Shown: positions 31,187-36,369, counted from the first letter of the stretch. The stretch is DNA of 64,000 nucleotides from Amoeboaphelidium protococcarum X5 (GCA_023515725.1 JALDTO010000215.1:459053-523052); one strand, 5' to 3'. The notes: generated by a model from the sequence alone, not told the origin. Numbers and translations are program-made.

Positions 31187-32803
31187 TCAGTCATAAGTCA
31201 CACCAGTAGTCACATCCATGTCGTTCAAGCCGAGCATTTCGTTCTGATCATCTGAGCGTTCGTACAACTCAATCTTCATATTGGGATCAGCATCAGGAGC
31301 ATATGGATTCTGCATGTAACAATTGCCCAGTGGATCGTCCAAAATGAAATGAAAGTTTTAGTTTGGCAAATCGCTGACATCAAAGTCGATGCACTTTTAC
31401 AATTTCTGCAGGAATGCTCTCAGTCTCTCAGATCTCTGCACGTCTTCAGGTGCAGCGTGATTCTAAACGTCACTATCACCACTAAGGAAAGGCATTCGGG
31501 AGTACAGCTCATCTTTCACCTGTGTCAGTAGGCCTTCAATGGTTGTAAACTTTCCACCTAGAGTGTATGCATCCAGAGTGAGTTCTAGCTCAGGCACGGC
31601 AATACCGCAACTCTCGCTCTTCAAGATATCACGATCCAAATCATCTTTACTAGTCACCAGCAATTGGATTCTCTTTCCCTTTTCACTTACGGCTCCACTT
31701 GCTTTAACTTCATTAGATTTATAGCCGCAGCCATCAGCATCGCACGCAGTGGCCATAATCAAAACTTCTTTGAAATACGGAATGGACAACAACTTCATTC
31801 TGCACACTGTGGGACTATAGCAATTAGGACACGATGATGGAAATTGCAAGACCTCCTCACTATCAATTTCTTATGAAGTATTCTGCTCCTTTAGTTATTA
31901 AGTCCCCTCTTGTGGTGAAGTGTCAACTTTACGTCTCTTTAAGTCGCGCTCCACCAGCTGCTATTACATAATCTTTACAGCCTCCTCAACCTACATCTTA
32001 TTCTCCTATTGCTACTGAGTCAATTACTTCTCGGCATCAGGATTCAGACCGATTTACTAAATCTATTCACTTGTCCTCTGGTAGAATGTCTTTGATAGAA
32101 CTTGAGCGGTATCACCATCAAGAGATTCAATGTAAGAGTTACCAGATGGATCATCGACAGAGAACTGAAAATTCATCTTACCATCAACCAGCTACTACAG
32201 CTTATCAACCACTGCATCCAACTGCTGATATAGCGCGTACATGTACTCACCTTCCTATTTAATATTATAGTCGGCGCTCTGCATCTTCTCCTGGGATACG
32301 CGCAGTCTCTCTCCCTAACTACTTCTGATATCATCAATAGCCTGAACTATAAATCCTTCAACAGTATTCAAACTGCCCTTCTACGTACCTGCTGGTATCT
32401 CTAGAAGTGCTTCGCTATTATTATTACCATTCTATTGAGCACCACTACCACCGCCATTAATCGCCTCTCTAATCACCACACAACCATATTCTCCTTTGAT
32501 CACTCGACGATTCAGATCTCTGGAACTACTACCATTATTATTGGTTGATAACACGTATTTGACACCGTGATCTTGAATCTATGAGGCGCTCTCCACGCCA
32601 TTATTAGTCCATCCACAGTCTGGACACTCAAATGCAGAAATGATAACCTCTTTAAAGTGTGGAATACTGGTGAGCAATAGCTAAGTCTTTCCATGTCCAG
32701 AACCACATTGCATACACATGGTATCATGGATCACCGTCGGCATATGATCATCCACCTTGTCCACCTCATCTTCATTCAGCACTCTCTTGATACTTGAAAA
32801 CAT
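31187..32803 (-). CDS. ZPR1: ZPR1 zinc-finger protein
   Basis: Two ZPR1 modules: CMQC..IPHFKEV..CPDCG and [25 protein letters not shown]; [10 protein letters not shown]; LDDPLGN. Confidence 0.93.
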
Positions 32804-33020
32804 ATTATTGACGAATACCAAATATTATTATATTGCTATTATATAATTTATAGAGATCTTATTATAAGGATATCAAGAAGAAGAAGAAAGAAATTCCATA
32901 AAAGTGATGAAAAATTCAAATTTAGTTCCATCAAATTCGAAAGCCATCAGCGCGGAATTCTCAAAATTCAATTAAGCCGCTGGAGAAAACAAAATCAACT
33001 AAATAAATAGAATATAAATT

Positions 33021-33425
33021 ATGCCGATTAGAAAAGTTTTTAGAGAGCCAGCAGATTTTGGACCATTGAGGATAAGATTGTAGCGAGTTGGCGCGCGAAA
33101 TAACGCGTTCTATAACATTGTAGTGGCTTAGGCTAGACATCGATAGTAGAATAAGAGTGTACATGATGTCTTGGGTACTTATTATCCTCACGCGTCATAT
33201 AGCTATAAAGATGTGGGTGCCTCTGATGAGCCTATTGCTGCTTATAAACACATCACTCTGCATTTTGATAGATGTAAAGCGTGGTTGGCTCAAGGCGCAG
33301 AGCCATCCTCGATGGTGTCCAAGATTCTATCTAAGGCTGGATTATGGCCTAGTCCACCGCGAAAGGTTGAGGTGATGAATGTCAGGGCGATTCAACACAA
33401 GGCTGCTGCTGAGAGAAGCTCATGA
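33021..33425 (+). CDS. MRPS16: Mitochondrial ribosomal protein S16
   Basis: LRIRLQRVGARNNAFYNIVVAQAR..VLGTYYP..RCKAWLAQGAEPS. Confidence 0.9.
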
Positions 33426-33537: not shown

Positions 33538-36369
33538 TCATTAAACTATAGAATCCTTCTTTTGAGCGATAAAAGTTAGAATGGCCTTTTTGATATCAGC
33601 GACTTACGCTGGCTTCTAGATAAAATCATTCATGCCAGCCTCGAGACATTTTAAGCGGTCAGACCAGAACGCATTGGCAGTTATAGCTATAATCCATGGC
33701 TTCTTGTAGGTGACTGTGAGATCTTCCTGACTACTGCTGTACTGTTCCTAGGAGGACTATGCGGAGTTCTATGACTATTACTGAATTAACGCGCTGCATC
33801 TCTTAGTGATTTCACCTGCAGCTTCAATTCCATCCTTGATAGGCATCATAAGATCTGTAAAGAAAATGTCAAAATTACGATGCTATTCCCACAAATCAAT
33901 CGCTTCTTGACCATTTGAGGCTACGAAGCAATCTTGGCCCAGTTTGTCAAATATTTTCTTCAACACTTTCTACGAAATAACATTATCTTCGGCCAGGAGG
34001 ATTCTCAGCCGCGGCAACTCATTCTGAAATATAGTGGATGTGGATTACTATTGCAAATTCATAGCACTCCCAGCAGCATCTTAGGGACCAGTCAAGTGAT
34101 GAGTCAGGAACTGATATAGAACGGCAATCTTGGCAGGTTTTCTGGTGTATATAATTGTGCAATCCGGAGCGGTTGAAGTGATCAACTTCTACCAGGACTA
34201 TATTTAGGATTATGTACCAGTAATTAAAATCTTGTTCCACATGTGTCTATCCCCAATTACCTACAATTACTATTCATGCGCAAGATACTGAAGATCAATG
34301 ACCATCACGTTGAACGCAGTCTTGAAAGCATCATCAAAAGAGTTAACAGTCTCAATTTTGGCAACATTAAGTGCAGACATGCAGCTTATGAAACATCCAC
34401 ATTACAATTTATCCGCGCACACAAAAGTAGTATTAACGTCGGTTAACTATTTCGTGCTTTCATATGAGGTGAATGAGCGCAGGGATAGATCGGGCCACTC
34501 TGATGGCACGTAAGACTCCAGCAATACTTCTGCATGAAATCTAGTGCCCACCCCATCATCCTCATTATCGTGCACAGTGACAACTCCACCCATACACTCG
34601 ACTAATTTTTTCACAATCGCCAATCCGAGCCCAGTGCCACCATACTTTCGTGTTATGCTACGATCTACTTGATAAAATGTCTCGAACAATTTATTCTTTG
34701 CCTATTGCGGAATTCCGATACCTGTATCCTTGACATCAATGAATATACGTACTTTCCCGCTTTCATCAACGATTCTAGAACTAAGCGCCATAGTCACATG
34801 TCCATCAGGAGGTGTGAACTTGACAGCATTCCCCGCCAGATTAAGTAAAATCTAACGGAATCTCGTAAAATCTCCCACGACAAACTCTTCAAATCTACGC
34901 CTACCAGTCTTAGGATCAAGTCCATCTTCAATTTTATATGTCAGTGACGGCAGCTTATGCATATCATCCGACTACTAAAGGAACAGGATATCCATGACAT
35001 TCTCAACTGCATCACGCGGAGAGAACACTTCTCTGGTCATATTAATCTTATCCTCCTCATACTTGCTAAAATCCAAGATATTATTGACAATCGATGCAAG
35101 CATGTCACTACTTTTCTTCATCATGGTGAGGGATTCTTTCAACTCAATAGCATCAGCCGGGGAAGCATTCTATATAGCATTAGAATCAAGAAGCATTTAA
35201 GTAAGAGCACTAGTGGAAAAGAGCGGAGTTCGCATCTCATGAGACATTACGGCAAGGAACTCTCTCTGAGCTTAAGCCACCTTAACTTCCTTCTAGGCAG
35301 CCTGTAAGCTCTAGTTCATTAAATTCAACTTTTCTATAGTGCCACGCTCACTCTTAATCATTGATGCCTACTACATGGCAATAGTCACCTATTCCAAAAT
35401 ATCAAGCAGAATATCTTTAGTCTGCGATACCATAGGCGGCCAAGCACTTGATGATCGACTGAATAAAGACAAATTTATACCAGACTGGGATGTGGGCTGC
35501 CTTTTACTAAACTATATAATAAGATAATAATCTTTGGACGCGCCACCTTTAAAACAGCTAACAATATAAATCATGCTACCGACAGACTATACCATAAGAT
35601 GCTCTTTACGCGCTTTAAGATCATCAAGTAGTGGAATCTCATCAAAAGAGCCAGATATCTATGGAGCAGAATCATGTATTCGCTGATATCCTAACAGACT
35701 CCTTGTAGAGCCATTCTTACTATCAGTACTGTTACTTTTCGACGCCAAAACTTTACTCTTACCACCAGTCTAGTCCATTGATGATCCAACACTCATGCGC
35801 CGCTTTATAGACCGACATACCTCATGGAAGGTGTGTGATTCTCGTAGAAAGACACTGCACTACTCGGCATGGCAGTTCTTAATAATCTACTAGCACAGAG
35901 TCTCCAAGATTACCTTACCATCCAGCGTCTACCTAATCTCATGCGATACATTTCTAAATAAGCCGAGAAGTCGATTCTGATACGATAAATCTCGCTCACA
36001 TTCAATACGCTCAGCAATTTCAATCTCCATATTGCGAGCATAAGCTGGAAACTCTAAAGCCTTCGGTATAATGAATATCAAGATAGCTGATGTATAGAGT
36101 GATACGACTGCAGTCAGAATTTTAAACAGAAGCATCACCACTGGCGTCTTCCACCACATGTTCCACGCGTTAACCAGATGAGTAGTGCCACAGAGTAGGA
36201 TGAAACAAACAAATAGCCACAGCACAGCCTTCCATGTGTAACTGATATCGGGAAACTTTCGACCAAATATCAGAATCTCTACAGGGATAGAGAAATATGC
36301 AATACATATCAGAAAGTCGAAGATGCAATTCATAGTCTAGAACAATGTCGAATCCTCTGGCTTCATCAT
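33538..36369 (-). CDS. ETR1-like ethylene-receptor hybrid histidine kinase (ethylene-binding TM domain, GAF, HisKA, HATPase, receiver)
   Basis: [35 protein letters not shown]; HEIRQTLD; [13 protein letters not shown]; NAVKFTP, DTGIGI, GGTGLGL; LLAEDN..FTDLMMP..KP. Single 943-codon frame. Confidence 0.92.

Follow-up and report, generated by a model that had tools for sequence, protein, structure and literature searches.

A gene for a hybrid histidine kinase in a reassigned code

We analyzed a 64,000-nucleotide stretch of the Amoeboaphelidium protococcarum X5 genome (GCA_023515725.1 JALDTO010000215.1:459053-523052; hereafter the window) and found on its minus strand a complete gene for a hybrid histidine kinase of the ethylene-receptor family (Table 1). 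The identity of the protein as a member of this family is secure. It is probably a functional aphelid membrane kinase, inherited vertically in the fungal lineage (Holomycota), that works by the mechanism proposed below.

The coding frame begins with an ATG at 36369, and its last codon ends at 33541, followed by a TGA stop at 33538-33540. Because 43 TAA or TAG codons (32 TAG and 11 TAA, versus 19 CAA/CAG) and no TGA lie in frame, the gene is open only if TAA and TAG are read as glutamine, and standard-code listings of open reading frames split the region into fragments. The frame sits within a run of 958 codons without TGA, unmatched in length elsewhere in the window, for which the chance is about 6e-11 per start, TGA having a frequency of 0.024 per codon. 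In the receptor frame, TAA and TAG mean glutamine: in an alignment of 20 homologs, the glutamine share is 19% in TAA/TAG columns and 16.5% in CAA/CAG columns, against a background of 4.5%; codon 506 (TAG) stands opposite glutamine in 18 of the 20, with codons 327 and 334 behaving similarly; and TAR and CAR codons (R being A or G) are exchanged between the two genomic copies of the gene. The same reassignment has been published for A. protococcarum (PMC5304391).

Translated under genetic code 6, the frame yields exactly the GenBank-derived protein P0152, whose 90% cluster comprises KAI3633784.1, KAI3649455.1 and KAI3648784.1, all labeled "hypothetical protein [Amoeboaphelidium protococcarum]". 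The gene model is thus already public, predicted but never named. Our literature search found no paper linking aphelids with ethylene receptors; papers that pair "aphelid" with "histidine kinase" do so by incidental co-mention (bacterial kinases being the subject of one, for example), and the aphelid transcriptome papers that we checked do not mention ethylene.

Pfam was run on the stop-free pieces of the frame and then on full-length P0152. The pieces yielded ETR1_N, HisKA and HATPase_c (the last two each as two halves) and a pair of Response_reg segments, all colinear. H377 lies in the motif SHEMRTP, and it is followed by an N box at 510-518 (N510/N514), a G1 box (DTGIGI) at 548, an F box at 562 (F562) and a G2 box at 577 (G577-G583); in a search of the PDB, histidine kinases matched the HATPase_c domain down to E 3e-37 (bacterial kinases). 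The receiver carries E794/D795, D839 (codon 33853-33855), T897 and K919, and its AlphaFold2 (AF2) model shows the canonical order of five strands and five helices with a predicted local distance difference test score (pLDDT) of about 90. These results bear out an earlier note on this DNA, written from the sequence, which had read the gene as a complete hybrid histidine kinase of ETR1 type, its H-box intact, with N and G boxes and the Asp and Lys of the receiver. A Gln/Ser-rich insert follows helix 3 of the receiver. Within this insert, a 12-nucleotide (four-codon) insertion after 33749 is seen in runs X5 and X7 and in the 947-residue variants; the length of this low-complexity loop varies among strains or copies.

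Residues 109-365 are colinear with GAF-bearing cyanobacterial homologs and with Entomophthoromycotina proteins, for which a GAF domain has been described (Ancylistes preprint, 10.1101/2023.12.22.573025). The AF2 model of this region (mean pLDDT 62, 70-93 in its ordered parts) runs helix, two strands, helix, four strands and long helix, and the top 29 matches of a Foldseek search with it against the PDB were all GAF domains (best E 5e-5, probability 1.0, target TM-score up to 0.68). The 54-residue insert in this region has no counterpart detectable by sequence in the fungal homologs. The linker at residues 617-789, for which sequence searches gave no homolog outside A. protococcarum and Pfam no match, is modeled as alternating strands and helices at a pLDDT of 26-61. 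A language-model feature search returned "response regulatory domain" (0.92) for it and, more weakly, the first receiver of plant cytokinin receptors, so that the linker could possibly be a degenerate receiver-like domain, a suggestion that we offer as a lead only.

A profile search of the genome (23.6 Mb, 346 contigs) found exactly two ETR1_N loci. The second copy, on contig C211, is intact, is about 90% identical at the DNA level, flanks included, and corresponds to KAI3633784.1 (947 residues); elsewhere in A. protococcarum, protein families have likewise been described as paired per strain (PMC10608142). Synonymous divergence between the copies (dS) is 0.31 and nonsynonymous divergence (dN) is 0.025, giving a dN/dS of 0.08, and residues 5-173 show zero amino-acid changes. 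Both copies are under strong purifying selection.

Sequencing data contain the gene as well. Contigs of 151-271 nucleotides with 0-7 mismatches map to it from environmental RNA libraries, one from freshwater and one from soil, and the receptor stretch is present in four small runs of one organism (2021; the kind of run is not on record). Two of these four runs gave gene-length contigs about 96% identical to the window, with upstream ends 100-160 nucleotides above the ATG; since these contigs show no joints, the gene has no intron. A contig that reaches about 33238 crosses the convergent S16-like gene and is uninformative about the receptor 3´ end. These data are compatible with transcription of the receptor gene, without proving it.

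Table 1. Coordinates of the receptor gene, its domains and neighboring genes, in positions of the window
Feature	Residues	Position	Strand	Remarks
Complete intronless coding sequence		33538..36369	(-)	943 codons + TGA stop; TAA/TAG = Gln
Ethylene-binding domain ETR1_N	13-106	36052..36333	(-)	three hydrophobic helices; Pfam PF25487
Coiled-coil linker + divergent GAF-fold domain	109-365	35275..36045	(-)	predicted fold
Disordered insert in GAF region	192-245	35635-35796	(-)	AF2 model
HisKA	367-439	35053..35271	(-)	Pfam PF00512, 58.6 bits; H377 codon 35239-35241
HATPase_c	499-616	34522..34875	(-)	Pfam PF02518, 92 bits; N, G1, F and G2 boxes
Lineage-specific linker	617-789	34003..34521	(-)	173 residues
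Receiver	790-941	33547..34002	(-)	Pfam PF00072, 65 bits in two stretches
Ribosomal S16-like open reading frame		33171-33425	(+)	converges on receptor gene, ~110 nt between stop codons
ZPR1 zinc-finger gene		31190-32872	(-)	further downstream

The neighbors of the receptor gene in the window are housekeeping genes, encoding ZPR1, the ribosomal S16-like protein and a methyltransferase.

The binding domain and its descent

The N-terminal domain matches ETR1_N (PF25487) over model positions 5-96 of 97; the cut-off is 27 bits, and P0152 scores 94.2 and the stop-free piece 98.2. Hydrophobic 19-mers are restricted to residues of about 12-37, 41-68 and 73-106, and hydropathy thus points to three N-terminal transmembrane helices. 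We aligned the domain with 284 family members and called a column invariant at 90% or more. Leaving aside position 76, dealt with below, 18 columns in which the aphelid protein has a residue reach this level, and all of them are kept (D18, Y25, I28, P29, F53, F56, I57, C60, G61, T63, H64, W72, K83, T86, A87, S90, T93 and P102), and D18, Y25, I28, P29, I57, C60 and H64 fall in columns that are 99-100% invariant. Given a two-residue loop insert, these seven and K83 correspond by spacing to D25, Y32, I35, P36, I62, C65, H69 and K91 of Arabidopsis ETR1. The first seven equivalences had been proposed in the earlier note, and the 284-member alignment agrees with them; all of the motifs quoted there are indeed present, one of them with a Q encoded by TAG. 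The ETR1 numbering is that of PMC11819568 and of established usage. That paper explains what C65, D25, H69 and K91 do, describes the "seven residues" that ETR1 requires to bind ethylene, and shows that a bacterial homolog with the same seven binds 14C-ethylene. The domain departs from the family in two ways: the loop joining its first two helices carries the insert, S43 and Y44, and at position 76, a Tyr in 94% of the family, it has Pro. A search of the PDB found no structure for the binding domain.

The protein might nonetheless be a genuine sensor kinase of this family to which ethylene is irrelevant, its copper-bearing membrane domain sensing the state of the membrane, redox or copper status, or some other small ligand, whether unsaturated or gaseous. 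Both departures would fit such a change of ligand, the family is very broad with few members tested (PMC11819568, PMC6682694), and no fungal-lineage homolog has been shown to bind ethylene; indeed, our literature search found no test of ethylene or copper binding for any of them. We nevertheless consider a different ligand rather unlikely. Ethylene binding by the aphelid domain is itself likely, as judged from the sequence, because every residue known to be necessary is kept and the tested plant, cyanobacterial and proteobacterial members with the same residues bind ethylene (PMC11819568). Also speaking against another ligand, the two copies have one and the same binding domain with 31% of their synonymous sites different.

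An exhaustive search with a 135-residue stop-free piece returned 5391 relatives (E<=0.001), most of them bacterial proteins with PAS, GGDEF or EAL outputs. The best matches beyond the protein's own cluster, at 40-45% identity, came from the chytrids Blyttiomyces, Gonapodya and Synchytrium, from Entrophospora (Glomeromycotina), and from Neoconidiobolus and Blastocladiella, with cyanobacteria interleaved. Judged by motif, no plant protein was among the best 150 of the 5391, and word-indexed searches with the binding domain gave bacterial and fungal proteins only.

Phylogenetic analysis, the check that the earlier note had proposed, clearly places the aphelid binding domain among its fungal homologs and not inside the bacteria. 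The IQ-TREE analysis covered 73 rows and 118 columns, none of the rows from plants; the alignment is short and the bootstrap did not fully converge, so that the inner branches are rough. Given as ultrafast bootstrap/SH-like approximate likelihood ratio test, support was 100/90 for the aphelid rows together and 94/78 for the aphelids with their nearest neighbor in the tree, P0065, a protein from a sequencing run that sits on a long branch. Support was 99/88 for these with the Rozella allomycis "putative ethylene receptor 1" and proteins of Blastocladiella, Basidiobolus, Conidiobolus, Neoconidiobolus and Entomophthora, 88/85 for all Holomycota rows, and 99/95 for the eukaryotes (with Cyanophora) against 54 bacterial or unnamed rows. 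P0065 (706 residues; logan:SRR28201015 contig L054, 2692 nucleotides, gene at 311-2431) has its binding domain joined straight to the kinase, without a GAF domain, and may come from an unsampled relative.

This placement changes how the gene should be described. The earlier note had called the receptor "plant-type", a label that is imprecise: the binding domain belongs to a clade of fungal homologs (Rozella, Blastocladiella, Entomophthoromycotina, chytrids and Glomeromycotina), the protein has extra modules compared with ETR1, and the CTR1/EDR1 and EIN3 components were not found (see below). Nor is this an uncharacterized signaling system, as had been suggested, since fungal ethylene-receptor homologs have been published (Herivaux et al., 2017, PMC5285503) and classified as histidine kinase group XVIII (Kabbara et al., 2018, PMC6324907).

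The tree also bears on whether this is a working aphelid gene at all. A chance frame, a relic, a contaminant or a recent transfer from algae or cyanobacteria might be suspected from the 43 standard stop codons in frame, and from cyanobacterial proteins scoring nearly as high as fungal ones, but we find any of these hardly credible. We rejected them on the grounds that the apparent stops are all TAA or TAG, aligned with glutamine and never TGA, and would be missing from a bacterial or algal gene; that dN/dS is 0.08 for two intact copies, each on a long contig and with diverged flanks; that the tree places the domain among fungal homologs; and that the neighboring genes are ordinary eukaryotic ones.

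Signal output and ligand source

Copper P-type ATPases are expected in any eukaryote, and the genome encodes a P1B Cu(I) ATPase with two HMA domains, CPC and DKTGT. Profile searches also gave 17 HisKA matches, amounting to about nine hybrid kinase loci, mostly paired. There is one type of HPt protein, encoded by a pair of loci (C233:683417 and C200:377135) and carrying an H..KG motif. A Skn7-type gene (C273:60793-62241) encodes a receiver and, about 0.8 kb upstream on the same strand, an HSF DNA-binding domain; in a second stand-alone REC pair (C264:1252504 and C207:981458), the receiver lies at the C-terminal end of an open frame of about 970 codons. All three kinds of candidate partner named in the earlier note (HPt, response regulator and copper ATPase) are therefore present. 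Elsewhere in the genome, two hybrid histidine kinase genes stand in tandem about 3 kb apart (G000:C215:8461-12744), an arrangement repeated on the homeologous contig (G000:C155:287733-292006).

We suggest the following mechanism. A Ccc2/RAN1-type pump would load Cu(I) onto C60 and H64 in the membrane, and ethylene bound to this copper would shift helix packing through D18, K83 and helix 3. The signal would pass through the coiled coil and the GAF-fold domain to the kinase, whose activity would probably fall, as it does in plant receptors. This would alter how phosphate moves from H377 to D839, on to a Ypd1-like HPt protein, and finally to a Skn7-type or Ssk1-like regulator. Output by this route, and not by the plant CTR1/EIN2/EIN3 route, is what we would predict from what the genome holds and lacks.

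A plant-like output without a phosphorelay, through a CTR1-like Raf kinase or an EIN2/EIN3-like route, would leave the kinase and receiver largely dispensable. There is precedent in plants, where the histidine-kinase activity of ETR1 is not the main output. Rewiring to partners other than response regulators has also been noted there (PMC6324907). The genome additionally contains a pair of genes of the RTE1 family (PF05608; G000:C98:477398-477850 and G000:C142:601129-601597). RTE1 regulates ETR1 in Arabidopsis, and the family is not known from fungi. However, relatives of RTE1 occur in animals without ethylene receptors, so the pair need not relate to the aphelid receptor. Searches of the 23.6-Mb genome, made without a positive control, found no match to the EDR1/CTR1 domain (PF14381) or to EIN3 (PF04873). 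With the catalytic and phospho-acceptor residues intact and under purifying selection, and with HPt and response regulators encoded in the genome, a plant-like output appears very unlikely.

If the receptor does bind ethylene, the gas would most likely come from the green-algal host or form in illuminated water. Host-derived ethylene is a plausible, if speculative, cue because green algae, including a Chlorella (Chlorella sorokiniana), release the gas (PMC11079000), and a similar suggestion has been made for Ancylistes, a fungus parasitic on algae. The fuller proposal, that the receptor detects ethylene from the host or from dense or lit blooms and so guides the aphelid in finding hosts, in encysting or in timing its development, strikes us as quite unlikely.

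Several points weigh against our preferred interpretation, that of a vertically inherited receptor feeding a phosphorelay, besides the negative literature search on binding mentioned above. The equivalence with ETR1 residues was drawn from invariant columns and published numbering, not from a direct alignment to Arabidopsis ETR1. No close ortholog from other aphelids turned up in protein searches. The GAF assignment of the earlier note stands at the level of fold (AF2 and Foldseek) and fails at the level of Pfam, whose GAF models gave no match at E<=0.1 on P0152, as they gave none in the fungal homologs; confidence in the predicted fold is only moderate. Contaminating DNA might be the source of the metatranscriptome contigs, and for the organism-specific runs the kind is not on record. 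Finally, both the sign of the signal, with ethylene turning off kinase activity, and the response regulators that we name are drawn by analogy only.

On balance, the gene is a real but expected member of a receptor family described in early-diverging fungi. Aphelids are the sister lineage of Fungi, and an intact, selected aphelid homolog supports the idea that the receptor predates fungal diversification, consistent with the ancestral pool of receptors proposed by Herivaux et al. (2017, PMC5285503). A. protococcarum is known from green algae alone, a group with ethylene-emitting members, and cultured host and parasite together offer a tractable system for studying what an ethylene receptor of the fungal lineage does. 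If the host proposal were true, a parasite of algae would for the first time have been found to eavesdrop on a 'plant' hormone, and to do so with a receptor handed down from the ancestor shared by fungi and aphelids. In practical terms the gain is modest; the gene model is available to all, if without a name.

Comparison with known systems

Among bacterial systems, Synechocystis SynEtr1 and Azospirillum AzoEtr1, both proven ethylene binders, share with the aphelid protein the ETR1_N domain with its seven binding residues and an output by two-component phosphotransfer (PMC6682694, PMC11819568). They carry other modules (phytochrome-like or PAS) and adjoin a response regulator gene of their own, whereas the aphelid gene has housekeeping neighbors and its product would need a separate HPt step.

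Arabidopsis thaliana ETR1, a subfamily-1 receptor, is alike in its three-helix copper- and ethylene-binding domain, GAF, complete histidine kinase boxes and C-terminal receiver. In contrast to ETR1, the aphelid protein lacks the N-terminal cysteine pair before helix 1, having C15 only, and its loop between helices 1 and 2 is two residues longer. Its GAF region is too divergent for Pfam, and it has an extra 173-residue module before the receiver as well as the Gln/Ser-rich insert within it. The catalytic domain of ETR1 (4pl9) matches the aphelid kinase at E 1e-14, compared with 3e-37 for bacterial kinases.

The fungal homologs (RaHHK2 of Rozella allomycis, APW29918.1, and proteins of Blastocladiella, Gonapodya, Synchytrium, Entrophospora and Conidiobolus) belong to the same binding-domain clade as the aphelid receptor and show the same order of ETR1_N, a GAF-sized module, HisKA, HATPase_c and receiver, including a long spacer ahead of the receiver. 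Identity in the binding domain is only 38-45%, however, and the 173-residue aphelid spacer is without a sequence counterpart in these proteins. Unlike its fungal homologs, the aphelid gene is written in a code in which TAR specifies glutamine, and it resides in an aphelid.

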